A stretch of 64,000 nt of DNA from Obrimoposthia wandeli (lineage: Eukaryota), in NCBI GenBank assembly GCA_977020255.1, contig CDROCS010000666.1:62001-126000 (forward strand). The letters are read 5' to 3'. The notes beneath the pieces are model-generated. The model ran no database searches. It saw nothing but the letters and a program-made list of their open reading frames with translations, and was not told the origin of the DNA. Below, in pieces: positions 12,318-51,182 of the stretch. The position numbers and the translations under genes were made by a program. Each line of letters begins with the position of its first letter. The stretch's first letter is position 1.

Positions 12318-12319
12318 AA

Positions 12320-15688: not shown

Positions 15689-15702
15689 TAATGAATTCAT
15701 TA
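15689..15702. promoter_or_regulatory. Perfect 14-bp palindrome, candidate operator for the Lol-like operon
   Basis: TAATGAATTCATTA, about 115 bp upstream of the 15575 start. Confidence 0.35.
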
Positions 15703-15888
15703 CGTCGGTATGATTAAATTAGTCCGAAGTTTAGAAGCTAACAATATCAATACATTATTTCTGTGACCAACGTTCTTGTTAGCCATGTCATCGTCTTAAA
15801 CATAAAAAAAACACAAAAAAAACAGCTACCGAAGTAACTGCTTTATGTATGCTAAAAATAATGTAAAACAGGTTATAACAACCTGCCT

Positions 15889-16668
15889 TTATTCACCGTA
15901 AATATCAAAACTAAAGTACCCAGCGGCAATCTTGTCGTAAGTGCCATTCTCACGAATCGTTTTAATCGCTTGGTTAAATTTATCGGCTAACTTTTTATCT
16001 TGTAGGCGCAATGCTAGCGCTGTACCTTCACCAATGTAGGCTTTATCTGTTACTGGCTCGCCTGCTAATGCAAAGTCTTTACCGCGTTCTTTCTCTAAAA
16101 ATGCTAAAACGAGTTGATCAGAATTACCGAATACGGCATCAAGACGCCCACTTACAAGATCGAGATACACTTCATCTTGACCAGTATAACGACGAATTTT
16201 AGCGACATCGCCATAGATATCGGTTACATAACGATCGTGAATTGTACCCAGTTGAACACCAATCGTTTTACCGTCTAATCCCGCTGTATCTATTGTAATA
16301 CCTGAATCTTTACCCGTTACAAAACGTGCTGGTGTTTGGTAATACTTGTCTGTAAATAAAACACGCTTTTTACGATCTTCCGTAATACGCATTGATGCCA
16401 TAATCGCATCAGCTTTACGTGATAATAATGCTGGAATGAGTCCATCCCAATTTTGTGAAACCCACTCACATTTAAGCTTCGCTTCTGCGCAGAGTGCGTC
16501 TGCAATTTCAATATCAAATCCCTTTGGAGTGCCTGATGCATCTTTATAATTAAATGGCGGGTAAGTAAAATCTGACGCTAGACGAATCACTTTTTCATCA
16601 GCGGCTTGTGCAGTAGTAAATAATGCTGACGCCAAAATAATTCCGACACTCATTAGTTTTTTCATCAT
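15889..16668 (-). CDS. Polar amino-acid ABC substrate-binding protein (family 3, LAO/His-like)
   Basis: YPPFNYKD, GFDIEIA, WDGLIPALL and GVQLGT; signal peptide. Confidence 0.9.
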   Translation of the reverse strand: MMKKLMSVGIILASALFTTAQAADEKVIRLASDFTYPPFNYKDASGTPKGFDIEIADALCAEAKLKCEWVSQNWDGLIPALLSRKADAIMASMRITEDRKKRVLFTDKYYQTPARFVTGKDSGITIDTAGLDGKTIGVQLGTIHDRYVTDIYGDVAKIRRYTGQDEVYLDLVSGRLDAVFGNSDQLVLAFLEKERGKDFALAGEPVTDKAYIGEGTALALRLQDKKLADKFNQAIKTIRENGTYDKIAAGYFSFDIYGE

Positions 16669-35607: not shown

Positions 35608-36504
35608 TTACATTCTTTTACTGGCGGCATTTCGCAGCATATTATAAAAACATTTGGCTGCTAGCCCAGTTTTCACGCCCTTGGGTAAGGTTAAGTGCAG
35701 AGGAACTTGATAACGCTCAGCATTTTCAATCTTAAGTACCACTATTTTATCATTCGCACGACTTTTCACTATGTGCTCAGGTAAACGACAAAATCCTACA
35801 CCCTGCTCAATGGCACGAAAAGCATGATCGAAATTATCTACCGTAATACGTTGCTGTGATTTGAGCCAACCAACATCTTGCTTGCTGTTTCTGTCTGTTT
35901 CGCTGCCTAAATCCCTGATCACAATTTGACTAGTTGCAGACATATCAGTAAGGCTAAGAGAGGCCTTTTGCGCCAACGAATGATGTGCCGCAACCACAGG
36001 AACCATGGTCGTAATGCCAAAAGCTTCTGCTGGGTAATTTGTAACAGGCAGATTAATAATAGCGATATCTGCTTGTTCACTGGTCACCATTTCTGTGGTT
36101 TTCGACAGTGACGTTTCCACTACCTGAATCGACGTAGTGCTATTTTGCGCTAAGTATTCCGCCATTGGCTGATATAGCCATTCCTGATCGCAAAGGTGAT
36201 CGACCGCAATAGTGATCTCAGATTCAATCCCTTTCGATAGCTGCTCACTGATCACTTCCAGTTCGTGTGCTTGATCCAGCAACGTATTGGCCCGACGCAA
36301 TAATGACTTACCGTCTTCAGTTAGAACCGCTCTGCGCCCTTGTATTTCTATCAGTGATATACCTAGTTGCCCTTCAAGCTTTTTGACGGCGTAAATCAGC
36401 GTGGTATGGCTTTTGTTCAATACTGTAGCAGCTGCCTGAATACTACCAGCTCGATCTATTTCATACAGTGTCAGCCACTGGTCGAGTGTCGTCTTTAATC
36501 TCAT
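35608..36504 (-). CDS. LysR-family regulator
   Basis: GSIQAAA..KSHTTLIYAVKKLE; divergent from ydhR. Confidence 0.92.
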   Translation of the reverse strand: MRLKTTLDQWLTLYEIDRAGSIQAAATVLNKSHTTLIYAVKKLEGQLGISLIEIQGRRAVLTEDGKSLLRRANTLLDQAHELEVISEQLSKGIESEITIAVDHLCDQEWLYQPMAEYLAQNSTTSIQVVETSLSKTTEMVTSEQADIAIINLPVTNYPAEAFGITTMVPVVAAHHSLAQKASLSLTDMSATSQIVIRDLGSETDRNSKQDVGWLKSQQRITVDNFDHAFRAIEQGVGFCRLPEHIVKSRANDKIVVLKIENAERYQVPLHLTLPKGVKTGLAAKCFYNMLRNAASKRM

Positions 36505-36632
36505 TGGTCTAATTTTTCCACAGTTAATGGCAATATTATGAACTTTTCTGTTTATTTTTTATAGGTAAGAATAGACCCAATAGCAGAAAACAACGCCGAC
36601 AAAATGGCAGACTAAAATACGGAGAGACAACA

Positions 36633-36938
36633 ATGAAAAAATTACTACAGGTTGATTTCGAGTTTAACGGCCCATTTGGTGAAGATATGGCAAATGCCTT
36701 AGTTGGACTTGCCGAATCAATTAACCACGAGACAGGCATGATCTGGAAAATCTGGACTGAAAGTGCCAAAGATAAGTTGGGTGGCGGCATCTATCTGTTT
36801 GAAGACGAAGCAAGTGCACAGGCATACCTGCTAATGCACACCGCGCGTTTACAGCAGATGGGAGTCGGTGAAGTTCGCGGGCATATTTTTGACATCAACC
36901 AACCACTAACAGCAATCAATAACGGCCCTATCAACTAG
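36633..36938 (+). CDS. ydhR: YdhR-like putative monooxygenase
   Basis: [37 protein letters not shown]. Confidence 0.85.
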
Positions 36939-36948
36939 GAATAAAACC

Positions 36949-37326
36949 ATGAATAACAAATCCTTTTTAACCCTACATGGTGGTATATACCTGCTATTCG
37001 CACTGGCACTGTTCTTTATACCTGACCTGATATGGCCTATGTATGGCGTAGAATTAAATGACCAATACGCCTATTTCCTATCACAACATACCAGCATCTT
37101 TCTGGGTGGCATCGCCGCTATTAGTCTGATGTTAAGAGACATCGAGCAAAAGGTGGTCACGAAGAAATTGTTGATCGCTTTAGTCATCACCAATGTTCTC
37201 GGTGTGATTATTACCGTCTATGCAGGAGTTAAAGGGATATTCGTTGGTTTTGGCTGGAGTGATCCCGCTTTCTTCACTTTGCTTTCAATACTCAGTTTTA
37301 TACAACTGAAAAAGCAGTCAATCTGA
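36949..37326 (+). CDS. Small 4-TM membrane protein
   Basis: Four hydrophobic helices; co-transcribed with ydhR. Confidence 0.75.
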   Translation: MNNKSFLTLHGGIYLLFALALFFIPDLIWPMYGVELNDQYAYFLSQHTSIFLGGIAAISLMLRDIEQKVVTKKLLIALVITNVLGVIITVYAGVKGIFVGFGWSDPAFFTLLSILSFIQLKKQSI

Positions 37327-37501
37327 GCGCTAAAACGAAGATAAAACTAAGAGAAAACAGATAAAGCCTGCCGTTGAGTTCATATTTTTCACTAGAAAGA
37401 ATCTAGAAAAAGAACCTATTGCAGGCTTTAAGCACCCTAGCATTCAATCATATACAGGATCTTAAGATCTAAGCGTATATTTTAGATAGAAAAAGACCAA
37501 A

Positions 37502-37528
37502 GATACTGCTTTGATACCAAAATGATAC
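37502..37528 (+). promoter_or_regulatory. Three GATAC pentamers at 11-bp period
   Basis: GATAC at 37502, 37513 and 37524, about 65 bp upstream of the DUF917 gene. Confidence 0.55.
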
Positions 37529-37593
37529 TGAACTAATCTCGACAACAACATACTGTTTCTGTTTCTGTTTCAACAATTGAAAGGATTCAAAAT

Positions 37594-38790
37594 ATGGTAT
37601 TAGAAAAAAAGACACTCAATCACGAAGATTTAAGCGATATTCTTTTAGGCGCTCACTTTTATGCATGCGGTGGTGGTGGCGCGCTAGAAAATGGTAAGGA
37701 GCTACTTAAAGAAATTGATAAGCACTTCAATTCAAAGTCTGAGGTTCAAATTCAATATGTGGAACTGGCTGAAGTCAAAGATACGGACCAGTTACCAGTA
37801 ATGGCTGCAATGGGGGCCCCGCAAAAATTTCTGGAAAAAGGTTATAGTCAATCCCCAATTAGTGCGTTTAATGCCCTTGAGAAACTCAGCAAAACCCAAT
37901 TCGCAACTTTATCACCCGTTGAAACTGGTCCGATAGCCTATGGTATGAGCTTATTAGTTGCTGCAGTAAAAGGTATTCCGATTGTTAATGGCGATGGTGG
38001 TGGAAGAGCTTTCCCATGTTTACAGTTATCTACCTTTGCGAATATAAACTTAGAGAGCCCGATAGCAGTTGCCCCCAGTGTACTCACGTCAGAAAAATCA
38101 ATGCAAGAAGACGGTGCCATTATTACTATTGACTGCGGTTCCAGTGCTGATGTTGACGCGATGACCAGAGGTATTATCAGTACCTCGAAGTGCTTTGATG
38201 ATCGTGCTTCTCTTGCCTCTTTCAACATGACTGGTAAGCAACTAAAACAGCCGAATGCGTTTGTGCCAGATATGCTAATTAAATCGAAAAATCTGGGGGG
38301 TCATATTAGGGAATGTATTTCAGACAACCTTTCTTGTTTTAGTGCCATAGAGCAATTAGACGGGGCTAATTGTGTTATGCAAGGCCGGTTAAGTAATATC
38401 CTTACTTTAACAGTCAATGGTTTTGACTGGGTCACACAAGAATACACCTCAAATTGCTCTAGTGAAAAATTCTATGTTGTTTCACAAAATGAGAATATGA
38501 TTTTATGGTCTGATGATATGGATACACCTATAGCGTTGGCACCTGATCTAATTTGCTGTATTTCTAGTGATGCATCTTTAATGAGCAATGACGAAATTAT
38601 CGAAGCCTGGAATAAAAACAAATCAGACACTCGCTTACAAGAAATGGCCATATTCACTTTACCTGCTGCCTCGCAAATTAACCAACCTTGGTTTCATGAC
38701 AACTTCTCCCAAATATTTAAGCAGTTTGGATATTTTGGTAGTTATCACCCACCAATAACGAAAAATACAGGAGGTTGCAATGCAGAGTAA
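37594..38790 (+). CDS. DUF917-family protein
   Basis: LGAHFYACGGGG, MGAP, PVETG and NGDGGGRAFPCLQ. Confidence 0.88.
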   Translation: MVLEKKTLNHEDLSDILLGAHFYACGGGGALENGKELLKEIDKHFNSKSEVQIQYVELAEVKDTDQLPVMAAMGAPQKFLEKGYSQSPISAFNALEKLSKTQFATLSPVETGPIAYGMSLLVAAVKGIPIVNGDGGGRAFPCLQLSTFANINLESPIAVAPSVLTSEKSMQEDGAIITIDCGSSADVDAMTRGIISTSKCFDDRASLASFNMTGKQLKQPNAFVPDMLIKSKNLGGHIRECISDNLSCFSAIEQLDGANCVMQGRLSNILTLTVNGFDWVTQEYTSNCSSEKFYVVSQNENMILWSDDMDTPIALAPDLICCISSDASLMSNDEIIEAWNKNKSDTRLQEMAIFTLPAASQINQPWFHDNFSQIFKQFGYFGSYHPPITKNTGGCNAE

Positions 38791-39517
38791 AATGAAGCTT
38801 AAAATTATCATTCCTGTTAATACCACTGAGTTTACCGCTCAGATCTCAAAAAGCGTTGATAAATTCAGAAGTGAAAGCGTGAGTATTGATCTTGAGCACA
38901 TTGATAATGGGACCCCTTTTATTCAATCTCGCATAGATCTCGCCATTAACGCGCCTTACGTTATCGAGAAAATAGTTAAAGCAGAACAAGATGGTTTTGA
39001 CGGAATATTTGTCACTGATATGGATATGTGCGGTGTTGAAGCGGCTCGGCAAGCGGTTAGAATTCCGGTGATTGGCGGGTTTAGACCTAGCCTTTACACC
39101 GCAATGTTATTAAGTCAAAAGGTTTCGATACTAACAGTGAATGATGTGGTGGATTTACAAAACGAGCATATCCGCGCATTTGGTGTGACAGAAAACCTCG
39201 CATCGATTCTACCTCTGAATAAGAGTGTTGATGAGTTAAAGAATCCAACACCTGAAGGCGAAAGCAAAATACTTACCGAGTTGTTTGAATTGGCATGCAA
39301 AGCTGTTGAACAAGATGGCGCAGGCAGCATCATGTTCGGCTGCACAGGATTCACGGATTTTGCCGCACCGTTAAACGAATTGCTAAGTGCTAAATTCAAA
39401 CAGAACGTTCCGGTGATGGACCCTAATTGTTGTGCAATTGGCTATTTGATTATGTTGGTGCAAAATAGACTTTCACAAAGTGGATTAAGTTATCCGTATA
39501 AGGGAGTTAGGCAATAG
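38780..39517 (+). CDS. Asp/Glu/hydantoin (allantoin) racemase-family protein
   Basis: IIPVNT, GVEAARQAVRIPVIG, FGCTGF and VPVMDP; overlaps the DUF917 stop. Confidence 0.85.
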   Translation: MQSKMKLKIIIPVNTTEFTAQISKSVDKFRSESVSIDLEHIDNGTPFIQSRIDLAINAPYVIEKIVKAEQDGFDGIFVTDMDMCGVEAARQAVRIPVIGGFRPSLYTAMLLSQKVSILTVNDVVDLQNEHIRAFGVTENLASILPLNKSVDELKNPTPEGESKILTELFELACKAVEQDGAGSIMFGCTGFTDFAAPLNELLSAKFKQNVPVMDPNCCAIGYLIMLVQNRLSQSGLSYPYKGVRQ

Positions 39518-39592
39518 ACCACGATATAGACGTATGAGATTTGGATAGAGGTGTAAATAAATGAAAGGCAGCCCAAAAAAGGCTGCTTTCAT

Positions 39593-39935
39593 TTATTCTG
39601 TGATGTCGATTATTCCTGCAAAGCATTCATACTGATGTGGTAAAATACATTAATTGAAACTGCCGAACGCAAGCGCAATTGAGAAAGCCATCTTTCCCAT
39701 AGCGAAGTAATGACCATCATTATTGCACTTTATATGTAACATCATCTCTATTTCAAAAAATTTATCTTGGTATTATCCATCACTATCACATTCCCGAATT
39801 TGCTCAGCTACACACGGTTTTTAAAAGTAATACCTTCTGTGCTCCCTATTAAGTGCAGCCTTAACTCGTCTAAAAAGTAAACCAACGAGGATTAAATTTA
39901 TAGACTCAACAAAAACTAAAGTTTGCCATAATTCA
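39593..39935 (+). mobile_element. IS982-family transposase remnant
   Basis: Manual translation LFCDVD..ERKRN*ESHLSHSEVMTIIIA..FPNLLSYTRFL..IKFIDST..VCHN, with stops and frameshifts. Confidence 0.8.
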
Positions 39936-40103
39936 AGAGTATACCTCGATATAAAGTATTTAAGGTTGTAACCAAAAAAAGGTAAAGAGAAGTGACATAG
40001 TTAATTTGGTCATCTAGTTTAGTTAGAAGTTGATATTATGTGCTTACGACAGGTCTGGCTTGTGATTGCCGGGTGGCTAATTTATCTTCAAATGTGGTAT
40101 TCG

Positions 40104-41111
40104 TTATGCCCAGCACATGGTTATCATGGCTGCAATATTCATGGGTCGAGTTTCGCCGCCACCAGTGTCAGTTGTTTTGATTTTCGCCATTGGGTTAATT
40201 ACTGGAGTACTAATTCCTGTCGGTTGTAAGGGTACATTTTGAGAGCCAAATTCTAATTGATGATTATGGCTGTGAATTTCATCCGATTCAGTAGATCCGA
40301 CACCATCGTATAATCCTTCTCTCCCTAGTAACTCTCGTTTATCGTTTCCAGTGTCTCTGTTCGATCCATTATCCCAGCTGCGAATAAAATACCCACGCAT
40401 ATCAGGGAGCAGAGAATTTTTTCCATTTTCGTCTGTTCCAAACCTCCCATTCAGTACTGAATTCAGCCTAGTCTGATTTTCATCTAATGCTATTGCTGGT
40501 TCGCAAACAGAAAGGTGTGTTGGAGGTGGAGTCTCCGTGTTTATCCAAAATTGCTGCTCCCCAATGATCCCTTTAACCATCAAAGGTAGATAATCTATGG
40601 CCTGCGCCCCTTTATTACAGTAAATTGAATATAGTATGATTTTTGCTTCCGGTACTTTACATTGCAGCTTAAACCTTAAAAAACTGGTATTTTCTCCAAT
40701 CTGAAGGTTTAATGAAAAGTTTATTAACTGGTTTTGTGCCGAAGGAATAGTCTTTGAGTTTTCAGCTTCTCCATCAGTAAGGGTCACAGTCACTTGAGCA
40801 CCTTCACTAATCATTATTGAGCCAGCAAGGGTAACCATTTCCCCTTGTAGATATTTATTAGCACGTGGAAATTCATTTAAATTCTGTGAAAGTGACAGGT
40901 ACGGAGCAGTATTCGACACAGTTAATTCACAACCGCCATCTGAATTTATTACCACTGGCATATTGTTACCTGATTTACGGTTTTCATACACCCATCCATC
41001 AGGATGGCCACAATCTCCTGAAACTTTATTACTAAAGAGCGAAAAATCACCGTTATAAACGAGATTGGTAAGAGCCTGTCTATTGTACTGTTGACAAAAA
41101 TGTTCATCCAT
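40104..41111 (-). CDS. CBM-like jelly-roll domain plus phage tail-collar domain protein
   Basis: N-terminal LTNLVYNGDF..DGW; C-terminal LPDMRGYFIRSWDNG..GS.E.DEIHSHNH..TGGGETRPMNIA. Confidence 0.8.
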   Translation of the reverse strand: MDEHFCQQYNRQALTNLVYNGDFSLFSNKVSGDCGHPDGWVYENRKSGNNMPVVINSDGGCELTVSNTAPYLSLSQNLNEFPRANKYLQGEMVTLAGSIMISEGAQVTVTLTDGEAENSKTIPSAQNQLINFSLNLQIGENTSFLRFKLQCKVPEAKIILYSIYCNKGAQAIDYLPLMVKGIIGEQQFWINTETPPPTHLSVCEPAIALDENQTRLNSVLNGRFGTDENGKNSLLPDMRGYFIRSWDNGSNRDTGNDKRELLGREGLYDGVGSTESDEIHSHNHQLEFGSQNVPLQPTGISTPVINPMAKIKTTDTGGGETRPMNIAAMITMCWA

Positions 41112-41370
41112 TGAGATATTCTCTTGTTATTATCTATACTTCTCTAATTTTTGGATTAACGTACATCCTGTATCTGTTGTTATCTGCTGGTCATATTCTT
41201 AGCAGAATTTGTCCTTGATAATGGGATATAAGCAAAAGCCAATGTAATACCATTATTGAATACATTCGCTTTTATGATGTTAGTGCTGTTCTCATTGCGT
41301 GGTAGTAACATACTGATTGCCAGGCTTTAACCCCTGGCTTTGGTTAATGTTCTTTTTTATGTAATGTGTA

Positions 41371-42063
41371 TTACGCCATTTCGACCAACTCTGTTTTAAA
41401 ACTTTCTACGAATGGGCTCGTACCGAATTTCAGATCTATCCAGTTGTTGTTTTCATCCAATGTCACACGTGCATGTGGTTTTGAACTAGGGAATACAATT
41501 TTTTGTTTTCCTGTTGTTTGATTTGCAGATATAACTTCATTGCCCTTTACTGAAGCGCTACCTGCTGTGACGTAGTATGATATGTCAGGTTCCATTGCTA
41601 GAACCGCATTATTTTCCGCCGTATGAACAAATGCCATTTTCTTGTTCATTGCTAGTGAGAACGCAAATGTGTCTGATGGAATAATGGGATCAGCATCTAA
41701 TGTTTCTATAAAAAAGGAACCAGCTTCGTCTTTACTATCAGTAGGGTCTGAAAATCCTGCAGCCCCATTGCTATCTAAATAAAACTTACACTTATTTGGC
41801 TTGCCAGAAATGCTAACATCTTTTTGTCCGCCGACGCTTAATACAGTCCCAGCTTTCAACGTTTCTGTTTCTGACCATTGTAACTGGAACGCTGTTTCCC
41901 AATTGAATCCTGCGTGCTGCGTGTCCCTTACCGGGCGAAGATTAGTTAACCATGCTGTTTGAGAGAAGCCGTTTTTCAGTAAGTTAGGATCGTCCTGGAA
42001 CATGAAGATGTTTTGTGTTTTTCCACTGTTATTTTGTACGTATAGAGTAAATTTATCTGACAT
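41371..42063 (-). CDS. RhiA-like beta-rich protein
   Basis: FTLYVQNNS..AW..FNWETAFQLQWSET..SYYVTAG..VF..ARVTLDENNNW resembles the RhiA family as recalled; no signal peptide. Confidence 0.6.
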   Translation of the reverse strand: MSDKFTLYVQNNSGKTQNIFMFQDDPNLLKNGFSQTAWLTNLRPVRDTQHAGFNWETAFQLQWSETETLKAGTVLSVGGQKDVSISGKPNKCKFYLDSNGAAGFSDPTDSKDEAGSFFIETLDADPIIPSDTFAFSLAMNKKMAFVHTAENNAVLAMEPDISYYVTAGSASVKGNEVISANQTTGKQKIVFPSSKPHARVTLDENNNWIDLKFGTSPFVESFKTELVEMA

Positions 42064-42303
42064 TTTATCTTTCCTTTTTTAAGTTGTTATATTGTTTAAC
42101 TGATTTAATTAAATTGAAATATCATCTTTTTCTACATATTCATCTAATTTCTACGGGGCGTATTTTATTTTTCCGAAAGAAGGGAGATTTAGGTTTTGTT
42201 ATGGGCTAAAACGTATGATTGCTAACATCGTCTTTCCAATATTGCCCCTGCAGCATCTTCTTATCCCATCGTCCAGGTTTACATAAACTAAAAGTATTAT
42301 GTA

Positions 42304-42507
42304 CTAACTAAACGTTGCACTATTCCCATTAACCCCTGTGCATGCTCGACCTACTTTGGCAAACCCTGCGACCTGAATTAAATAATCGTCATTTACTACA
42401 AGCACACCAGGATTATTTATATTATTAACGTTCCTTGCATCCTCATAATCAGTTGTTCCTGTTGCTATATCAGCAGTTCCAGCTTCGTTTAGTATTAGTA
42501 CGTTCAT
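42304..42507 (-). CDS. Small hypothetical protein (67 aa)
   Basis: AGGGA RBS; follows the conserved hairpin leader; first gene of the leftward unit. Confidence 0.55.
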   Translation of the reverse strand: MNVLILNEAGTADIATGTTDYEDARNVNNINNPGVLVVNDDYLIQVAGFAKVGRACTGVNGNSATFS

Positions 42508-42745
42508 GATATTATTCCCTATATCGATTTATGTTTATATTTATATTTATAGTCATAGGCTCTTTTATATTGCCTATAACATGTATTTAAAGTCCACGCG
42601 GTGGATTTTATTTTTACTATATCTTTAACGACAGTGATTAAATAGCAACGAATATTGCTGTTATTGAACCACTCCACTTTTTTACTGATCTTTTAGCACC
42701 AAAATTAGCGGTTAAAAATACTTACATTTCAGATAACACTAATTG

Positions 42746-43288
42746 CGTTAAACTTTATTAAAATAGTATTAAGGTGTTCTTAAAATATATTTATTCGCAC
42801 TTTTTAATCGCCTTTCAATATTCAGCTCATCGAAGTCACAATATAAATATACGAGCTAAATATAATTCCTTCCGTATCAAAACAGCATCATGTGCTCATA
42901 AGTCAGTATCTCTTGGTATCACAATATCAATATTTTCTAATTACTTTAATTGGTTACGATAAATGTCAAACTTGCTAAATTCAGGTTTGCATATACTCTA
43001 AGGTTACGGCTATATATAAAACTAGGAATAACATATGGCAGGTAAAGTGCTAATCAATGGAATGAAGCTGAAGCAACTTGGTATTAGGGAGCAACACGCA
43101 CTCTCTTGAGTAGAAGTTAGCTAACTTCTTCGCCGTGCCTATCGAGGAACTTATTACTGCAGACTCGGTAAAAGTCGCTGATATGCCGGCGTCCACTATG
43201 GAAAAGCAGAAAACCTTGTTCTGTGGTTACGATCTGCGTCGAAATACATACTTATTGAAGTTGCAAGACAAACGGCAAAACTCGAACC
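42746..43288 (+). repeat. Diverged copy A of the regulator module (paralog of 46555-47188)
   Basis: Long collinear matches, e.g. CGTTAAACTTTATTAAAATA, CTTGCTAAATTCAGGTTTGCATATACTCTAA and AAACGGCAAAACTCGAACC. Confidence 0.95.
42874..42920 (-). promoter_or_regulatory. Phased GATAC array (site A)
   Basis: Minus strand GATAC-n5-GATAC-n16-GATGC-n6-GATAC. Confidence 0.7.
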
Positions 43289-43380
43289 ATTTTCAGGTTC
43301 CTCGGGTCACCGTTCCCTTTGTTTCGTTAACCCTAGCTAAGGCATCTGATGGTGTAAATCATCTGCGTCACTTAGGTTAA
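43035..43380 (+). pseudogene. Decayed paralog of the XRE-STAND regulator
   Basis: ATGGCAGGTAAAGTGCTAATCAATGGAATGAAGCTGAAGCAACTT matches the 46839 start; small insertion, deletions through the HTH, and loss of NTPase/TPR. Confidence 0.92.
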
Positions 43381-43407
43381 TGAAATATTGTGCAAAATCG
43401 TTAAAAT

Positions 43408-43454
43408 GATACGAAAAGATACATCGACAAAGCTGGATGATACGCAAGTGATAC
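43408..43454 (+). promoter_or_regulatory. Phased GATAC array (site C)
   Basis: GATAC at 43408, 43418, 43439 and 43450; same 10/21/11 spacing in a non-homologous context. Confidence 0.7.
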
Positions 43455-43730
43455 TGCAATAATTAGCACGTTTGCTAAATTTAATTTGTGGCTTCGGCTT
43501 GTTGACAATAATTATGGGATCAGACCAATTACAATAAATTTAATATGATTATTATATTGTAATCGATAAGTATATTTTTATTTAGCTAGTGCTAACAAAA
43601 TAAACACCACAATGATAACGTTCAACTAATGCTGGAGTCATACAATAAATGCAACAGATTAAAAATTGATAAGTGAGTCAGTTGAAGGAAGAATTTTACT
43701 CTCACTCATAAACTCAAAAACCACGATATC

Positions 43731-43907
43731 AATGGTCTGATCAGGCGTTTCTGGCCTAAGAAATTCGACATGGCGACTCTTACAGAGAAGGCTATTGAGG
43801 ATAGGATTTTCATGCTGAACCTCACTCCTAGAAAAGTATTGGGAGGGCTAACACCCTTTGAACCCTTTACTGACAAGTTTGCCTATTTCGGAGTACTAAC
43901 TCTTTAA
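43731..43907 (+). mobile_element. IS30-family transposase C-terminal remnant
   Basis: NGLIRRFWPKKFDMATLTEKAIEDRIFMLNLTPRKVLGGLTPFE. Confidence 0.85.
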
Positions 43908-43921
43908 CAGCTAAATAGGAT

Positions 43922-43978
43922 GTTAAAAGACCATTGTCTTTTAACTCCATGTTATAGGCAATGGAAAGAGCCTATAAC
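43922..43978 (+). promoter_or_regulatory. Tandem hairpin leader upstream of ORF 44007
   Basis: GTTAAAAGAC-CATT-GTCTTTTAAC followed by GTTATAGGC-n10-GCCTATAAC; the second hairpin recurs at 42552-42580 on the minus strand. Confidence 0.6.
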
Positions 43979-44006
43979 GTCGATTATAAATTAAAAGGAT
44001 AAAATA

Positions 44007-44315
44007 ATGAAGAACACAGAAAGTTTGCCAGGAACGGGGATAAATCCTGGAGATGTTACAATCGTCAATAATGGTTCACCCTGTGAGGTTAAACTATTAA
44101 GTGATGATGGACTGCATGCCGATTACGGTTGGTATGGAGAGCAAGCAGGAAGATATGTTACAAAAAATGGGTTAGAAAATATGAACGGCAAAGCCATATG
44201 GGTTGAGGTAAATGGACAAATATTGTGTAAAAATCTAACTCCTTACAATACGGATTGGGCACCAATTGTCTTTGAAATAAATCCAGACTCTAACGACTGC
44301 CATCTAGCTCAGTAG
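44007..44315 (+). CDS. Small hypothetical protein (102 aa, no signal peptide)
   Basis: AAGGA RBS; beta-rich; three Cys. Confidence 0.7.
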   Translation: MKNTESLPGTGINPGDVTIVNNGSPCEVKLLSDDGLHADYGWYGEQAGRYVTKNGLENMNGKAIWVEVNGQILCKNLTPYNTDWAPIVFEINPDSNDCHLAQ

Positions 44316-44563
44316 GAAAAATCTCTTTTCATTTGATAATTCCATCTCTCAACGATTTGGTAATAATGGCGACCATAGTAAATTTTTAATAAGCAATACT
44401 AAGATCAATAAGTTAAAAACATTTTACAATAAAACTTGGTCGCTCAAACTATGCCCATCTGAGTATAGAATAATCTGGGTGTAGTTTTTAACCACACCCA
44501 GATATGAATAGTAATCACCTCTAAAAACACATTTCTCTTTAAACCTTTATTGAAGGACACATT

Positions 44564-45583
44564 ATGAAAATAGCATTGAAAATAGTCATTATCGTCGATG
44601 ATACCTATGACAGCATTGCGACAAATATTAATGCCTCGGTTGGTATTAGCTATCAAGATATCGAATCGACCAATCCGGGTGTGCCACCTCAAAGCATTAG
44701 CCCGGAACAGGTCATATTAATTCCCACACACGATAACGAGATAATAGGCCCATGGAAATACACTATATTTGCAGGCGATTCATTTTCATCTATAGCCGAC
44801 GGTATTAACCAATGCAAAGGCGTGACGGCTCAAGGCATTGAACAGGCTAACGATACACCAGCCAGCGAGTTGCAAGTAGGGCAATCTATTGATATTCCTA
44901 CAGAGGACGAAATAACTCCACTTCCACCAGTAGTTACCGCCGAGAATATGGGTTATTGGGATAAAACCTATTCACCCGGCGATCCACTGTTAGGTGCAAC
45001 CATTGGGATTGCATTTAGTGGTTGGGCCGATGTAAACCAAGCCATTGAGGATAGTAAAAAAGTCTACGATAATTTAGTTGGTGAGAAATATATCTCAATC
45101 GGTGGTGGTGCAAAAGATACAGGTAGTTTTACTAAAACCGTGATCGATCAAATTAATACTGCCATCCGAAATAACCAGTTCAAAGGTTATACAGGGTTGG
45201 CCTATGATGTTGAAGAGGGTGATTCGGGATTGGCCTCTGACTTTAGTGAATCATTTGCCCTCGCCCGGAAGAATAATTTAAAAGTACTGGTTACAATTAG
45301 TCATTCTGCACCTTATGGCATTCTTGACAGGGTGGCGCTGATGGAGAGTTTTTTAGAGGATGAAAACATCGACTTTTTGTCACCTCAGCTTTACAGTGGT
45401 GGTGACGAAAAGGAAAATGACTATCATACCCTCTCAGATTTTCCATGGACTAAGTATAGAAAATGCCAAGCTGCTATTTTAGTCTCAATTGTCACCGCCG
45501 ATATGTATGAAGACGCTCAGAGCTACTTTGAGAAGCTCGATATCGAGCTTAAAGGTTATATTCAATGGGCAAATGTAAGTTAA
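44564..45583 (+). CDS. Tandem LysM plus GH18-like TIM-barrel protein
   Basis: DDTYDSIA..NP..QVILIP and YTIFAGDSFSSIA..VGQSIDIP (two LysM); ISIGGG and GLAYDVEEG. Confidence 0.8.
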   Translation: MKIALKIVIIVDDTYDSIATNINASVGISYQDIESTNPGVPPQSISPEQVILIPTHDNEIIGPWKYTIFAGDSFSSIADGINQCKGVTAQGIEQANDTPASELQVGQSIDIPTEDEITPLPPVVTAENMGYWDKTYSPGDPLLGATIGIAFSGWADVNQAIEDSKKVYDNLVGEKYISIGGGAKDTGSFTKTVIDQINTAIRNNQFKGYTGLAYDVEEGDSGLASDFSESFALARKNNLKVLVTISHSAPYGILDRVALMESFLEDENIDFLSPQLYSGGDEKENDYHTLSDFPWTKYRKCQAAILVSIVTADMYEDAQSYFEKLDIELKGYIQWANVS

Positions 45584-45586
45584 TGG

Positions 45587-45785
45587 GGTGATCTGCAAAC
45601 AGAGCAGTATCAACCCTCACCCGTCAGTCGTGTTGAGATAGATAAACCCGATGGCGGTAAACGCCAACTGGGTATCCCAACCGTCATTGATCGGGTGATC
45701 CAACAAGCCATCGCTCAGGTACTAACGCCCATCTTTGACCCCGATTTCTCGAACAACAGTTACGGGTTTCGTCCGAGTCGAAACG
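45587..45785 (+). mobile_element. Group II intron reverse transcriptase fragment (~66 codons)
   Basis: YQPSPVSRVEIDKPDGGKRQLGIPTVIDRVIQQAIAQVLTPIFDPDFSNNSYGFRP; no YADD or maturase domain. Confidence 0.9.
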
Positions 45786-45828
45786 GGCTAATGCCCGTTT
45801 TAATGGTATTTAGGTTTTGTTATAAGAT

Positions 45829-46512
45829 TTATTGGATTATATATTTAAATACGAACCCCGCGGTAAAAGTTCGCGTAGTGTTGCCCAGATTAAGAACTAC
45901 ATTATACATTGTGTTTTCTTTTAGAGTTCCTGCAGAGAAATTAACGGGCACCAGTCCAGATGATGCGCCAGGGGTAGACATTTGCTTCGCTTTCCGATCA
46001 CCTTGTCCCAAAACAGTACCTTCACGAAGAATAAGCCACGTAATATCAGAACTGGCAATTGCGTTCGATGGTCTATTAAAAAAGGTGTTAATTCCAGTTA
46101 GGTTTTTAGAAATTACCGTCAATGAACTCATGCCTTGTTGAACAGGCTGCCCCGCCATAATTGATTGCGTAGCTGCTACAGTATTTAAATTTCTATCAGC
46201 AGTTACAGCAATTGTATATGCCCCCTTTAAAAAATTCAAATCGCCTGGATTAACCGACACAGAGCCTTCATTACTGTTTATATTGGCTCTGTAAACTGGT
46301 GTTTTCGTTTCATTCACTATAATCCCTTCCCAGATAACAACTTGTCCGCCAACATTGTCATCAGGCATTTTATAGTTAAATGTTAGCTCAGTGGCTGATT
46401 TAATCTAGAGGTTGGTAATTTCCGAAAGATAGCCAACATCATTATGGGAACCTTTATAATTTTCCAATGATGGCAATACTAAAACTTCGTCTAGTGTGTT
46501 TACGTTACTCAT
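45829..46512 (-). CDS. RhiB-like two-domain beta-sandwich protein with an in-frame TAG at codon 36
   Basis: ATG at 46512 with AAGGA RBS is in frame with ORF 45829-46368; TAG at 46407-46405; LTFNYKMP..VVIW..YTI..SSLT..FNRPS..W resembles RhiB as recalled. Confidence 0.55.
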
Positions 46513-46554
46513 AATATTATCCTTTTATTTATAGGTTTTTAATAAAAATAATTT

Positions 46555-47188
46555 CGTTAAACTTTATTAAAATAATTTCAAGGTGACCTGAAATATATTA
46601 ATTAGCACCTTTTAATCGCTTTTCGGTATTCAGCTAATCGAAGTGACAACATTAAGATACAAGGTGAATATAATTTCATTCGTATCAAAACAGCATCATG
46701 TATTTGCTCGTCGGTATCTATTGGTATCACAATGTCAATATTTTCTAATTATTTTAATCTGTTACGGATAAATCAAGCTTGCTAAATTCAGGTTTGCATA
46801 TACTCTAAAGTTACCATTATATGAAACTAGGTGAGCACATGGCAGGTACCGTCCTGATCAATGGAATGAAACTGAAGCAACTTAGGGAGCAACACGCTTT
46901 ATCTCAAGAAGGGCTTGAATATGCGTGCAGCCAAAAAAAAGGGTGTAGTGTTTCAATTGCGACCATCAAAAGAGCTGAGCTGGGCACCCCCTTGAGTAGA
47001 AGAACTGTAGCGAGGTTAGCTAACTTCTTTACCGTGCCTATCGAGGAAATTATCACTTCCGACTCGGTAAAAGTTTCTGAAATACCGGCGCTCACTACGG
47101 AAAAAACAGAAAGTCTTGTTCTGTGGTTACGAACAGCTTCAAAAGACATGCTTATCGATATTGAAAAACAAACGGCAAAACTCGAACC
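46555..47188 (+). repeat. Copy B of the regulator module
   Basis: Paralogous to 42746-43288. Confidence 0.95.
46682..46728 (-). promoter_or_regulatory. Phased GATAC array (site B)
   Basis: Minus strand GATAC-n5-GATAC-n16-GATGC-n6-GATAC. Confidence 0.7.
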
Positions 47189-49724
47189 TTTATTTACCCA
47201 GTGTCTTGGCAACACGTTGATGATAGCCCTCCCATGCATTCTTAAAGAAAAGAAACTCTATTTAGCATTACAAAACATTCTATTAGAGTTATCTCTTTAT
47301 TCAAGTAGTCGGTTTAGTGCATTGATCACCGTTCAGGCTCTGACTAAGTCGTCCAATAATCAATGGATATTAGATGATCATCGCATAAATGCGCTTTCTG
47401 AGTTAGCAATACAAGTACAGAGCACATCAATCGTTGTTTCTGATGTGTTATGCGAAGCAAGTATGCGTTATTTTTTATATCAGAATAATGAGTCGATTTC
47501 AGGTTTTAAGACGTTAGTTCAGCAGTGTGAACCTTTATCAAATTACACTATTGGTAGAGATCATGAAATCCAGCTATTTCGCTATGCCATTAATAGCGTT
47601 GAGCAGGAGCAAAAGAGCTACTTTTTGACGATTAATGCCGTTGAAGGTATGGGCAAGAGTCACATGTTGGATGTATTGGCTGATATGGCCAAAAAACAAG
47701 GCTGGCTAACGATTAGATTAGATTTTGAGTTGTCACCTACGCCTTCAGAAATTCTGATTAATCAATTATATGACGCTTTAAATACTAACGATGATATAAC
47801 GAAAGAATATAAACAAATTCAAGTTGCCGACTACCCACTAATACTATCAGAAAACATTATAAGTATGGACCGGGAATCAGGCCCTATCTTTTTATCATTA
47901 GATAACTTCCACTTGATAGACCAAGCTACTTTAAAATATCTCAGTAATATGATGGAACGCATACTAAATAAGGCCATTTTATTTGCTGTAAGTTACTTAC
48001 CGTCCAATGAAACAAATCGTTATACTGAAGAGCTTCGTTATTTGAGATTACCAGAAATAAATATGGCTTTGGCTCCATTAACGGCTAAGGATATGGAGAC
48101 ATTTTCTCGGGAAGGGCCGATAATACCTGACGATACTAAGCTCTCTTACATGGAAATATCTGAAGGAAACCCATATTATTATCAACAGCTATCTAATTAT
48201 GGGCATGAAAATAGAATTCCCTCTACGATTAAATTTCACCTTCAGAATAAAATTGATTGTCTGTCACCTTTATCAAGACAAGTTCTTGCTCTTATTTCAC
48301 TGACTTCTAATAACCTAACGCTAGATTCTATCAATTCGATAATTTCTCTCGCGAGTTCGACAATTGAAGAGTTGGTAGGCATGAGATTGCTTAGAGTTTC
48401 TAATGATAAAATAATCACAATATGCCAGCCATTTTTGCGAAATGTAATACTAGGCAATATTCGACACCAAGATAAATGCAACATCTATCTGTCTCTCGCG
48501 AAGCAGGTTAAAGATAGTGCTTCATTATCCGATCTCAACGTGCAATTGAAGTTAGCTGACTATTACAGCCAAGGAGAAGCGTGGTGTAAGGCGGCACTGT
48601 CTTTTTTAAATTGTGGTCAGTATTATACGGAGAAAGGAGAGTATCGTCAGGCTCAATGTTACCTGAAGTTGTCATTAGAACATCATCAAAAAATCCCCCT
48701 ATTATCACAATCAAACGAATTATTGTTAGATATTCGCCTAAATCTGGCAACCATTGTTCGTGTTACACATGGCTGGGTTAGTCATAGTACAGTGGCAGCT
48801 TATCAGAATTGTATTTCGCTAGCGAAACATCAGCGATGTGCAAAGCGCCATTGTATTTCATTGAGTGGTTTGTGGGTGACTCAGCTAATGGCCATGGAAT
48901 TTGAATTATCTGAGGTAACAGCAAATGAAATTCTGTCGTTAGCTGAGAAATCCAATGAATCTAGTTGTAAAGCTCTAGCCCACAGCTGCTTAACAAATTC
49001 TCAATTTTGGCTTGCGAAGCACCACCAAGCAATAAACAATGCGAAGCTTACATTTAAGTACTTCCAAGAGGATAAGGACACAGCGACCTATGCAACAATT
49101 GGTCTAAATCCATTAATGTTGGCAGGTTGTTTCGGTAGCTTATCGGCTTCACTACTTTGTCAAGATCAGGAGGTGAGCTACTTTCAAAGCCACAATCAAG
49201 ATAAAGTTATAATAAATGAACCATTTAGTTACGCTATCGCGTTGCAAGGAGAAGTCTGGGTAAGTTATCACTTGCGAGATTTTGAACAAGTAGTCGGATT
49301 GTCAGAGCAATTACTATCCCTTGCTGAATCATATAATTTCCCTTTTTATAAAGGGGTAGCCATGCTTTTTAAAGGCTGGGCACAGCTTTTCACATCGAAT
49401 CAAGATGCAGAAAAATCGTTGATAGTTATAGAGGAAGGTTACAATCACTGGTTAGCATCAAGTGGCGATCAAATCGCACACTCCCTTTACTCGCTTATCA
49501 AAGCTGAGTTATATATAAAAGTATCACGACAGGACGAAGCAATACGTCTTTTAGAAAATGGGATAGAAATTGCGTTGAAAAAAAAGGAAGCGTGTTACTT
49601 AGTTCCTATGTATGCCATGTTAGCCTCTTTAAAAAATAAGGATGATCATTACAGGGAATTAGCAAAAACCACCGCTAATGACCAAGATACCACTTTGTTT
49701 TTACAAGAATACAGTCTTAATTAA
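46839..49724 (+). CDS. XRE-HTH / degenerate cyclase-like / STAND AAA NTPase / TPR protein
   Basis: LKQLREQHALSQEGL..SIATIKRAELG (XRE); IGRDHEI, EGMGKS Walker A, LSLDNFH Walker B, EGNPYY; helical TPR-like C-terminus; start set by conservation with the paralog. Confidence 0.88.
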   Translation: MAGTVLINGMKLKQLREQHALSQEGLEYACSQKKGCSVSIATIKRAELGTPLSRRTVARLANFFTVPIEEIITSDSVKVSEIPALTTEKTESLVLWLRTASKDMLIDIEKQTAKLEPLFTQCLGNTLMIALPCILKEKKLYLALQNILLELSLYSSSRFSALITVQALTKSSNNQWILDDHRINALSELAIQVQSTSIVVSDVLCEASMRYFLYQNNESISGFKTLVQQCEPLSNYTIGRDHEIQLFRYAINSVEQEQKSYFLTINAVEGMGKSHMLDVLADMAKKQGWLTIRLDFELSPTPSEILINQLYDALNTNDDITKEYKQIQVADYPLILSENIISMDRESGPIFLSLDNFHLIDQATLKYLSNMMERILNKAILFAVSYLPSNETNRYTEELRYLRLPEINMALAPLTAKDMETFSREGPIIPDDTKLSYMEISEGNPYYYQQLSNYGHENRIPSTIKFHLQNKIDCLSPLSRQVLALISLTSNNLTLDSINSIISLASSTIEELVGMRLLRVSNDKIITICQPFLRNVILGNIRHQDKCNIYLSLAKQVKDSASLSDLNVQLKLADYYSQGEAWCKAALSFLNCGQYYTEKGEYRQAQCYLKLSLEHHQKIPLLSQSNELLLDIRLNLATIVRVTHGWVSHSTVAAYQNCISLAKHQRCAKRHCISLSGLWVTQLMAMEFELSEVTANEILSLAEKSNESSCKALAHSCLTNSQFWLAKHHQAINNAKLTFKYFQEDKDTATYATIGLNPLMLAGCFGSLSASLLCQDQEVSYFQSHNQDKVIINEPFSYAIALQGEVWVSYHLRDFEQVVGLSEQLLSLAESYNFPFYKGVAMLFKGWAQLFTSNQDAEKSLIVIEEGYNHWLASSGDQIAHSLYSLIKAELYIKVSRQDEAIRLLENGIEIALKKKEACYLVPMYAMLASLKNKDDHYRELAKTTANDQDTTLFLQEYSLN

Positions 49725-49829
49725 ATGAAATACTTCACTATTATTTATTGTTTTAATAGTGATTGAAAAAGCCTAAGCGGTAATCCGATAATCCCCACAA
49801 AATTTACGCACGATAATTGTTTCTCGCCG

Positions 49830-50000
49830 TTTGAAAACGCTCAAGATGTGGGACAAGTAGATAAAGAAAAGGATTCCAAACAGCTAGCACGACATATTCA
49901 AATGAAAATTGTAGTATTACGCACTTATACTTCTGCATCTAATGTAAATCACCCCCTAGAGCAGATGATTGACGATGTATTTACGCACTACCCTTTCTAG
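49830..50000 (+). pseudogene. TetR-family regulator C-terminal remnant
   Basis: FENAQDVGQV..KQLARHIQMKIVVLRTY..EQMIDDVFTHYPF*; no HTH or start. Confidence 0.55.
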
Positions 50001-50423
50001 AAAATGCACCAAAATGATGTAGCCCACACTCAACTTGTGATGCAACCCCAAGATCTTAAGTATGATTATTGCCTAAAATATAAATTTGTGATTCTCGTTT
50101 CTTATTGCTGATGATATAATCAATTTCTATATTATTTTGATTATTGACGTTAGAGGTTTTTTTGTTTTTATTTATTGCTTTAGTTCTGGGTGTTTTTTTT
50201 ATGGGTTCATGGTTAATTAGTCATACTCAGGTGAGCCAGATGTCAGAATTGTATGTGAGTTATTTCGAATAATAAGCTTTGGCTTTGCTTAAGCGCCCGG
50301 GTAATACTCAATATTCTATTAACTCTGAGTTCAGTGATCATCGCCAACCTCTTTATATTGGTTGGCTATTTAACACATGCCTTACAAGCACAATGCCATC
50401 ATTTTAAGTGACATACTTACGCG

Positions 50424-51182
50424 TTACAACGCCAACCCATCCCAAAATAATTTACTGCCAGATAAAAAGAGAAAGAGATAACACAATTTATATATCAAAT
50501 TTTGGCTAACACGATGCAATATTCCAATACCTAATTTTACGCCTACTGGGGCTAACGGCATTAAAACGAGTGCGGTTAATAAATTGGTTTTATCAAACTC
50601 GCCAAGCAATGTGTAAGGCACTAATTTAAATAAATTAATAATGCCAAATAGTACAGCCATGGTCGCAACAAGCACGACTTTATCAAGCTTTAACGGTAAT
50701 AAATAAATACTCGCGGGGCCGCCACCGGCATGAATAGCAGTGCTCGAAAAACCACTGAGCACACTCCAAAACCAAGCTGTTATTACACCTAATATCCCCC
50801 TCGGTTTTTTATTCACTTTATTTCTAGAAAGAATATACTGCAAACAAAACAAAAGTGATAAGCCACCGATTAACAATTTCAATCCCGCTTCCGGTGTAAC
50901 ACTGAGAAATAAACCCGCGAGTACAACACCCACCACCGCTCCGGGTAGCATTAATTTGATCTGAGTATAATCTGCATGTCGATAATGTTCTTTTATCGCA
51001 AAGACATCCATTAAACATAAGATGGGTAAAAGAATCGCGGCAGCTTGAGTAGGGGCAATCGTTAATGCCATTAATGGCACAGCAATAATACCTAATGCGC
51101 CGCCCAAACCACCTTTACCGATCCCATAGATCAATACTGCAGGAATTGCAGTGACATAAAACCAAGGATCGGAAACGATCAT
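50424..51182 (-). CDS. Sulfite exporter TauE/SafE-family protein
   Basis: GIGKGGLGG, AAAILLPILCLMD and HAGGGP. Confidence 0.9.
   Translation of the reverse strand: MIVSDPWFYVTAIPAVLIYGIGKGGLGGALGIIAVPLMALTIAPTQAAAILLPILCLMDVFAIKEHYRHADYTQIKLMLPGAVVGVVLAGLFLSVTPEAGLKLLIGGLSLLFCLQYILSRNKVNKKPRGILGVITAWFWSVLSGFSSTAIHAGGGPASIYLLPLKLDKVVLVATMAVLFGIINLFKLVPYTLLGEFDKTNLLTALVLMPLAPVGVKLGIGILHRVSQNLIYKLCYLFLFLSGSKLFWDGLAL

Follow-up and report, generated by a model that had tools for sequence, protein, structure and literature searches.

The bacterial transcription factors closest to the one considered here are STAND proteins in which a nucleotide-binding core is combined with a repeat sensor and a DNA-binding domain, as in AfsR and the large SARP-NOD-TPR regulators of Streptomyces (NOD, nucleotide-binding oligomerization domain; TPR, tetratricopeptide repeat), MalT of Escherichia coli, and GutR of Bacillus subtilis. 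Here, we analyzed a 64,000-nt stretch of DNA deposited under Obrimoposthia wandeli (GenBank assembly GCA_977020255.1, contig CDROCS010000666.1, positions 62,001 to 126,000 of the forward strand; hereafter the window, with positions counted from its first letter). It encodes a 961-amino-acid (aa) protein with a predicted XRE helix-turn-helix (HTH), a STAND core, and a TPR tail. Phased arrays of TGATAC boxes lie in front of an operon for a DUF917 protein and a racemase and in front of variable genes, termed cargo, in a slot between the racemase and regulator genes. The reading that we favor, and judge reasonably probable, is a ligand-switched STAND activator of a small catabolic operon, with the same promoter type driving strain-specific cargo; in it, we infer activation, the mode of switching, the ligand, and the function of the cargo. 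The window was compared with 21 other loci encoding a full-length regulator homolog (22 loci in all).

The closest promoter layout is that of AfsR and the large SARPs, which share with the regulator an N-terminal DNA-binding domain, a STAND NOD, and TPR, and whose targets, as here, carry direct repeats phased at about 11 bp with the proximal repeat at -35 in promoters that have no -35 element. They differ in having an OmpR-type winged helix and a BTAD domain, whereas the present protein has an XRE HTH, an extra alpha/beta domain between HTH and NOD, a marine gammaproteobacterial host, and targets that are not antibiotic clusters; the sequence relation is limited to the NOD-TPR core. MalT shares the AAA_16/STAND core and repeat sensor, and its inducer- and ATP-dependent activation, through arrays of short asymmetric boxes before weak catabolic promoters, is what we propose here as well, but its HTH is LuxR-type and C-terminal and its box sequence and layout differ. 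Precedents for AfsR- and MalT-type activators have been described (PMC10936776, PMC4381067). By protein core, MalT and the cyclase-AAA_16-TPR proteins (mycobacterial Rv0386 type, TOMM kinase/cyclase fusion) are the closest groups; in the latter, the NOD-TPR part is homologous and a domain of cyclase topology occupies the same position, whereas the regulator adds an N-terminal XRE HTH and its predicted output is DNA binding, not cyclic nucleotide synthesis. GutR, a single-operon activator switched by a small substrate, likewise has an N-terminal HTH, an NTP-binding domain, and TPR, but has neither the intermediate alpha/beta domain nor a known variable cargo slot, and no sequence relation to it was seen, though no search aimed at it was made; it has been cited as a non-immune STAND protein (PMC13581612).

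Part of the cargo resembles rhiABC(R) of Rhizobium leguminosarum: in the window as in Rhizobium, the rhiA-type gene comes before, and on the same strand as, a gene for a protein with the tail-collar domain of RhiB. RhiB has been reported to carry this Pfam domain, and RhiA to have no Pfam domain or known function (PMC13133039). The Rhizobium genes lie in a plasmid and nod/nif context that the window does not have and are governed by quorum sensing, whereas a TGATAC promoter is predicted here, and the RhiB-like protein of the window has an extra, unassigned N-terminal part of ~170-200 aa. No LuxR- or LuxI-type domain was found in Pfam scans of the island ORFs (ORF, open reading frame).

A STAND-class regulator with a predicted N-terminal HTH

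The regulator, the arrays, and the conserved operon are laid out as follows.

37501..37556, plus strand: DUF917 promoter, three boxes and a -10-like element (box scan; three-box layout before DUF917 in seven other loci)
37594..38790, plus strand: DUF917/S-Me-THD-like protein, 398 aa (Pfam, PDB match, 15/22 loci)
38780..39517, plus strand: Asp/Glu/hydantoin racemase family protein, 245 aa (Pfam Asp_Glu_race)
42846..42921, minus strand: array B, four boxes and TATATT (box scan)
43407..43481, plus strand: array C, four boxes and TAAATT (box scan)
46654..46729, minus strand: array D, four boxes and TATCTT, divergent from the regulator (box scan)
46839..49724, plus strand: regulator, 961 aa (Pfam, alignment, AlphaFold2)

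The XRE-STAND-TPR protein proposed in the preliminary description of this DNA holds up. Its long ORF spans 46821-49724, and residue numbers start at the ATG at 46821, as in the alignment of 17 sequences and in the AlphaFold2 model; the start is probably the ATG at 46839, because the alignment is invariant from M7 on. The domains are an XRE HTH (residues ~15-77), an alpha/beta domain (95-235), an AAA_16 NOD (~240-540), and a TPR sensor (~540-965). Pfam places AAA_16 above its cut-off at residues 244-380 (E 9e-8), and HTH_31 (21.3 bits, cut-off 27), HTH_3 (16.7 bits, cut-off 23), and TPR_12 score below the gathering threshold. The motifs EGMGKS, LSLDNFH, and GNPYY are present; G276, G278, and K279 of Walker A, D361 of Walker B, and the recognition-helix stretch of the HTH (S45, A47-E53) are invariant across the 17 aligned homologs. 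The AlphaFold2 model (predicted local distance difference test score [pLDDT] 83) has a four-helix N-terminal domain (residues 15-69), an alpha/beta domain, a nucleotide-binding core, and an all-helical tail from ~540. The best Foldseek match of this model is the STAND-TPR protein PH0952 (6mfv, 7e-12), followed by Avs3, CED-4, Apaf-1, Orc1/Cdc6, and MalT, with Avs5 also among the matches; a profile search of the PDB gave PH0952, Orc1, MalT, and TPR matches. There was also a weak match to TPR_MalT. Residues 239-933 align with a cyclase-AAA_16-TPR protein over ~700 residues (hhalign, 99.7% probability), and there are matches to TIGR03903, the TOMM kinase/cyclase fusion (5e-5), and to the NCBIfam AfsR model (E 0.003). 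This evidence supports a STAND-class protein with an N-terminal HTH.

The region between HTH and NOD had been called degenerate cyclase-like, and here topology and position agree while the sequence tests do not. In the model, residues 95-235 follow a beta-alpha-beta-beta-alpha-beta order and precede the AAA_16 module as in cyclase proteins, although this topology is not specific to cyclases. Pfam gave no match of these residues to PF00211 (class III cyclase), hhalign against the cyclase domain of protein P0018 aligned 23 columns at E 0.4, and their profile search against the PDB returned nothing. In the only hhalign stretch, which is not significant, LWLR of the regulator lies opposite LFSD of the cyclase, and what we take to be the cyclase metal-binding positions read GN in place of the usual GD. 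On topology and position, a degenerate cyclase-like domain is plausible but unproven.

About 16 related protein clusters were found, all from Vibrionaceae or marine metagenomes, the closest being 94% identical. The TPR tail (residues 581-927) also matches the phage protein family phrog_25255 (E 2e-34).

TGATAC box arrays and promoter geometry

A phased GATAC array had been reported before the DUF917 operon and before every unit facing away from a regulator copy, and the box scan recovers the same picture. Four arrays contain all eight TGATAC pairs found with at most one mismatch (0.9 expected), and GATAC-N5/6-GATAC occurs six times (0.2 expected), always inside the region; expected counts were computed for the 64-kb window. 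The DUF917 array consists of AGATAC (37501), TGATAC (37512), and TGATAC (37523) at a spacing of 11 bp, with TACTGT at 37551-37556 (offset +23). The other three have four boxes spaced 10/21/11. On the minus strand, array B reads TGATAC (42921-42916), AGATAC (42911-42906), TGATGC (42890-42885), and TGATAC (42879-42874), followed by TATATT (42851-42846), and array D has boxes at 46729-46724, 46719-46714, 46698-46693, and 46687-46682, followed by TATCTT (46659-46654). On the plus strand, array C (boxes at 43407, 43417, 43438, and 43449; TAAATT at 43476-43481) points toward the 102-aa and LysM genes and has the same layout as the array of the P. jeanii locus L002.

The third box is TGATGC in both B and D, and these two arrays count as one observation because both lie in a duplicated segment. 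The decayed regulator copy reported near 43035 is confirmed and is part of this ~560-bp duplication: 42733-43291 corresponds to 46542-47191 (83-90% identity), has lost ~100 bp, contains early stops, and takes in the array together with the first ~118 regulator codons.

The element TAnnnT lies 22-24 nt past the last box in 27 of 30 arrays and exactly at +23 in 22 of them, against a background of 0.019 per position, a statistic that is inflated since orthologous DUF917 promoters are not independent. This spacing puts the last box at -39 to -35, an arrangement known from activator promoters of the MalT and AfsR/SARP types. The sequence that follows it is TGAAYT, a poor -35 element. Array spacers differ in sequence, and the TAnnnT rule holds across unrelated targets. 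Judged from the sequence, the position of the boxes relative to the -10 element fits activation as the predicted mode.

At least one box pair is present at 18 of the 19 regulator loci scanned, nearly always next to the regulator gene or the DUF917 operon. Upstream of DUF917, the three-box array recurs in L001, L002, L003, L056, L059, L061, and L063, with a two-box form in four more loci, and array D has counterparts in L056, L065, L003, L059, and L061 and a degenerate one in L060. A four-box divergent array was found at every cargo locus whose upstream region was read and is missing from the empty-slot loci L001, L057, and L063. Even where regulator identity is down to 22-28% (Gilvimarinus, Oceanospirillaceae, Aliamphritea, Ferrimonas, and Photobacterium), a TGATAC pair lies no more than a few hundred bases away, before targets that include genes for an MVL-type lectin and an L,D-transpeptidase (YkuD_2), a Tad pilus operon, and a gene beside a cyclodipeptide synthase (CDPS)-like gene and a racemase. 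Relatives sharing only the HTH (L012-L055) have nine box pairs in 724 kb, and only L038, from a Thiotrichales metagenome-assembled genome, has a pair at the HTH gene. There (9874-15910), a TGATAC-N5-TGATACTGAAT promoter with TACTAT at +23 lies before the gene for a short XRE protein with the same recognition helix as the regulator; an A-run marks the point where this gene is interrupted. Further along the operon are genes for a LuxR-type response regulator and a phage-type lysozyme, two RhiA-like genes, and a 374-aa ORF. This distribution supports the view that the boxes travel with the regulator family across genera.

At the Gilvimarinus algae locus (L004, 13040-16716), downstream of a 26% identical regulator, a racemase and a 408-aa protein with a cyclodipeptide-synthase domain (E 2e-8) occur with a box pair and TATACT at +23.

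The DUF917-racemase operon is the conserved partner

The DUF917 protein matches S-Me-THD_N (1e-26) and S-Me-THD_C (6e-13) in Pfam and PDB entry 2o3i (1e-22); the racemase (Asp_Glu_race, 1e-26) is encoded by a gene that overlaps the DUF917 end, and the terminator scan places a terminator-like hairpin at 39565-39589 after it. The two genes adjoin the regulator in 15 of the 22 loci, including every locus with at least 36% regulator identity and a long enough contig, and in tblastn searches with all island proteins they were the only ones found beside regulator homologs. In L062 and L067, the pair is divergent from the regulator. At the Vibrio ostreicida locus L001 (7611-9638), DUF917 and racemase form a single 675-aa ORF, an apparent gene fusion.

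Clusters for cyclodipeptide oxidases are jointly enriched for DUF917 proteins and hydantoin racemases (bioRxiv 10.1101/2023.09.25.559410). This association and the CDPS-like gene at one distant locus lead us to suspect a cyclic amide as the substrate of what is probably a small pathway of breakdown or modification, and our guess for the substrate class is hydantoin-like or cyclic dipeptide-like.

The slot between racemase and regulator

The preliminary description had read the putative targets as a kit for host interaction or antagonism, and the neighbor survey does not support such a conserved kit. Relatives of the RhiA-like, RhiB/tail-collar, LysM-GH18, or small proteins were found beside none of the other 21 regulator homologs, an outcome that the description itself had listed as speaking against its reading; only DUF917 and the racemase recur. 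Elsewhere, the slot is empty (L001, L057, and L063) or carries unrelated genes on the minus strand: a pair of 231-aa paralogs, of which one is a lipoprotein, in L003, L059, and L066; a 399-aa protein in L002; a 143/194-aa family in L060 and L061; and an amine oxidase in L065. Nor is the content stable over short distances, as the slot is wholly different beside the 94% identical regulator of L056, where it encodes a GH19 enzyme and proteins of 209 and 79 aa. Window and L056 are 91-95% identical on both sides, with homology ending at 39520 and resuming at 46541, and a 37-bp terminator match ties L056 to 45788-45824. The flanks are housekeeping genes that are syntenic between strains.

In the simplest history, the gene that is now broken was at first alone in the slot of the window. 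Another locus of this type then contributed ~6.3 kb, and with it came array B, the regulator fragment, and array C. The first two cargo units seem to have been acquired together with part of a second regulator locus, and the island of the window is best described as strain-specific cargo in a swap slot, a partly decayed composite.

The cargo genes and the scars between them are as follows.

40104..41111, minus strand: 335-aa cargo protein with a tail-collar/RhiB-like C-terminal part (PHROG profiles, RhiB pairwise)
41371..42063, minus strand: 230-aa RhiA homolog, cargo (tblastn and pairwise)
42304..42507, minus strand: 67-aa cargo ORF, first gene downstream of array B (ORF)
42508..42845, minus strand: conserved ~300-nt leader following array B (related leaders in L056 and L065)
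43036..43291, plus strand: decayed 5' fragment of a second regulator gene (duplication comparison)
43698..43907, plus strand: short ORF fragment, presumably like a transposase/integrase C-terminus (Pfam no match)
44007..44315, plus strand: 102-aa cargo ORF (ORF)
44564..45583, plus strand: 339-aa protein, two LysM domains plus a GH18-like TIM barrel (Pfam, AlphaFold2, Foldseek)
45620..45790, plus strand: reverse-transcriptase gene fragment (RVT_1 N-terminus), mobile-element scar (Pfam RVT_1)
45829..46512, minus strand: broken 227-codon cargo gene (homologs spanning both pieces, frame check)

The leader between array and first cargo gene is 70-80% conserved among the window (42508-42845, minus strand), L056 (9530-9833), and L065 (1813-2110). 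That of array B ends in a palindrome, GTTATAGGC-N12-GCCTATGAC (42552-42582), and GTTATAGGC-N12-GCCTATAAC lies upstream of the 102-aa gene (43949-43978). Palindromes of this kind (GTTATAGGC-N11/12-GCCTATAAC, 9-bp arms) are found 25-45 nt upstream of cargo starts, also in L056, where the leader too ends in one and another precedes the GH19 gene (9556-9586 and 8777-8807); L065 keeps the left arm only (1841-1852). Homology between loci stops at or just after the palindrome, which could serve as a proximal promoter, form a hairpin, or mark an exchange junction. RNAalifold on the three leaders gave a covariation term of +1.9, that is, no support for a conserved RNA structure, and an Rfam scan of 36500-50500 returned zero families. 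We also considered an integron attC site and rejected it: attC sites measure 57-141 bp and have RYYYAAC/GTTRRRY cores at cassette ends, and the palindrome, at 30 bp, is too short and mismatches the core consensus, with no integrase domain in the scanned island ORFs.

A bolder form of our reading, which we consider doubtful, is an expression platform with a plug-in slot. The four-box promoter and ~300-nt leader would end at the palindromic junction GTTATAGGC...GCCTATAAC, behind which orphan genes (RhiA/RhiB-like, GH18-like, GH19, GH24, amine oxidase, and lipoproteins) would be swapped without an integrase, all answering the DUF917-racemase signal. If so, the pairing of a signal-less beta-rich protein with a cell-wall or chitin glycosidase in the window, L056, and L038 would point to enzyme-assisted cargo release.

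Cargo proteins

The RhiA-like assignment of the 230-aa protein stands: it is 30% identical to Rhizobium RhiA over residues 4-212, or 90% of RhiA (pairwise E 3e-22), and tblastn against plasmids gave 39 records, 35 of them Rhizobium and most of the listed ones annotated rhiA (best E 3e-16). A word-based search with this protein found nothing; the relation emerged only from tblastn against plasmids, and a PDB sequence search with the RhiA family was likewise negative. The RhiA-like gene is followed on the same strand by that for the 335-aa protein, and the Rhizobium gene after rhiA is annotated as a tail fiber protein. A RhiB-like and a tail-collar protein had been listed as two proteins; both labels belong to this one 335-aa protein, whose C-terminal ~120-150 aa (about residues 175-331) match PHROG tail and tail-fiber families (4e-10 to 8e-8) and RhiB (pairwise 6e-10), with weak matches to Pfam Collar (0.024) and, in a PDB sequence search, the T4 short tail fiber (0.14). 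Searches detected no relatives of the 67-aa ORF, and none of the 102-aa ORF, including a PDB sequence search. Among cargo proteins compared from other loci, the 209-aa cargo of L056 is an uncertain RhiA relative (hhalign E 0.0065, probability 6%), and the 231-aa cargo of L003 proved unrelated.

For the protein described as LysM2-GH18 (339 aa), the LysM part is confirmed by Pfam (3e-10), and the barrel is GH18-like by Foldseek but has no Pfam Glyco_hydro_18 match. It consists of two LysM domains and a ~210-aa domain without a Pfam family, short for such a barrel, which in other members of the family (209 homologs) is also fused to PG_binding_1, a chitin-binding module, or DPBB. The AlphaFold2 model (pLDDT 93.6) matches SleL best (2e-8), with GH18 chitinases at 2e-8 to 1e-5 (TM ~0.4-0.5), and D215 and E217, candidates for the catalytic D-x-E that family 18 enzymes carry on strand 4, are invariant in the family alignment. 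The closest homolog (L068) is encoded in a YcaO cluster without boxes; thus, this gene is not tied to the regulon elsewhere. At the Vibrio spartinae locus L060 (12654-18859), a Pkinase-AAA_16-TPR protein (1383 aa) and a YcaO gene are found 1.8 kb downstream of the regulator.

The 179-aa ORF is the 3' part of a 227-codon gene, which also includes an upstream 35-codon ORF and is interrupted by an in-frame TAG at 46407-46405 (codon 36). Relatives such as P0141, P0143, and P0144 are intact at 214-261 aa, and a search of the 179-aa ORF against plasmids gave no match. One 834-aa relative matches in five stretches. The earlier observation that no island protein has a Sec signal holds for the window, where the N-termini were inspected, but not beyond it, as some homologs of the broken gene have signal peptides and some cargo proteins at other loci have signal or lipoprotein leaders.

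The RVT_1 fragment (Pfam 8e-8) covers the N-terminal 49 positions only and lies just before the shared terminator (45780-45801). The fragment at 43698-43907, which we take to resemble a transposase/integrase C-terminus and for which Pfam gave no match, sits between array C and its first gene. A hairpin with a 14-bp stem (44473-44503) lies between the 102-aa and LysM genes and another (41319-41338) after the RhiA-like gene; either may separate transcription units.

From left to right, the order is DUF917, racemase, the 335-, 230-, and 67-aa ORFs (minus strand), the decayed regulator 5' copy, the 102- and 339-aa ORFs (plus), the broken gene (minus), and the regulator (plus). The window sequence is free of N, and G+C is ~37-40% across the island versus 42-46% in most of the flanks. 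In the flank, a CTGATA hexanucleotide is repeated four times (56025-56047, minus strand) and encodes (Asp-Thr)4 within a 625-aa acyltransferase gene, whose L056 ortholog has 636 aa.

Proposed mechanism and alternative explanations

By analogy with MalT, GutR, and AfsR, the switch may work as follows. Before induction, the repeat sensor would keep the STAND core closed; an inducer would bind the TPR part, upon which the NOD would take up ATP and multimerize. The multimer would align several HTH domains head to tail, allowing them to sit on arrays of two to four TGATAC boxes with one or two helical turns from box to box, and the protein at the proximal box (-39 to -35) would replace the missing -35 element and recruit RNA polymerase. 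The ancestral target would be the adjacent operon for DUF917 and the hydantoin-type racemase, and the four-box promoter would fire away from the regulator into the variable slot. In the window, the slot would comprise three units: (i) the 67-aa ORF with the RhiA-like and RhiB-like genes, (ii) the 102-aa ORF with the LysM-GH18-like gene, and (iii) the broken 227-codon gene.

Several observations weigh against this scheme. XRE proteins are usually dimeric repressors acting on inverted repeats, and the proximal box overlaps the -35 region, from which a bound protein could equally repress. Walker B reads D-N (LSLDNFH, N362); this Asn, nearly invariant among the homologs, stands at a position that is normally Asp or Glu in STAND and AAA+ proteins, and it may hint at weak nucleotide hydrolysis. 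From a cargo array to the first start codon, the distance is 130-330 nt, and the palindrome just ahead of several cargo genes is a second promoter-like element that also reads as a weak -35/-10 pair. Several island genes are set apart by gaps of 240-260 bp and by strong hairpins, so that joint transcription of the RhiA-like, RhiB-like, and LysM genes from the arrays is only predicted. The promoter statistic is inflated, as noted above, and regulator binding to the boxes is something that we infer from their co-occurrence.

The usual repressor role of XRE proteins and the position of the proximal box would be accommodated if the same protein, on the same boxes, were a repressor of the -35 region that is released by an inducer. 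We think this unlikely: TGAAYT after the last box is not a good -35 hexamer, which is typical of activator-dependent promoters; the characterized STAND transcription factors (MalT, GutR, and AfsR) are all known as activators; and boxes on one helix face out to -80 fit recruitment better than occlusion. Somewhat less likely again is that the cargo arrays are leftovers of recombination, with only the DUF917-racemase operon regulated and the cargo silent or decaying. The fragments of regulator, reverse-transcriptase, and transposase-like genes and the gene with an in-frame stop within 7 kb agree with this idea, as do unrelated slot content in close strains and cargo proteins with few or no relatives, but array, -10 spacing, and leader are intact before cargo in eight loci of several species and absent at empty slots, arrays B and D have kept every box at 83-90% overall identity, and most cargo ORFs are intact.

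An Avs-type anti-phage sensor with a DNA-binding output, which would sense a phage protein and induce cargo effectors (glycosidases and tail-fiber-like proteins), is suggested by Avs3 and Avs5 among the Foldseek matches, by the phrog_25255 match of the TPR part, and by cargo that varies between strains like defense genes. It is nevertheless improbable, because PADLOC over nine proteins matched no defense family, the constant partner is a pair of metabolic enzymes, the flanks are syntenic housekeeping genes, and the fold likeness is that of a generic STAND core, common to MalT and Orc1. We give still less credence, indeed very little, to another factor binding the TGATAC arrays and a merely coincidental adjacency to the STAND gene. 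LysR-type regulators encoded nearby in several loci leave room for it; however, loci that share the regulator alone still have boxes within 100-900 bp of it, the recognition-helix residues are invariant across the family, and the short Thiotrichales XRE protein combines the same helix with the same promoter. The box arrays stand well clear of chance, and the comparison between loci supports a STAND activator with a direct-repeat operator.

Significance

Compared with the described systems, the XRE domain, the extra alpha/beta domain, the TGATAC operator, the DUF917-racemase target, and the variable slot are new. An uncharacterized regulator family of marine Gammaproteobacteria thereby gains a predicted operator, a predicted promoter geometry, and a predicted core target. 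If our reading is correct, XRE would be the fourth type of DNA-binding domain among STAND transcription factors, and one reading direct rather than inverted repeats. The slot illustrates how far content can turn over between near-identical strains. Homologs of RhiA and RhiB, proteins that have lacked a known function since 1992, would come under another switch, one that may prove tractable, in a genome of the Vibrionaceae, and the link between DUF917 and a hydantoin-type racemase may help to assign a substrate to this enzyme pair.

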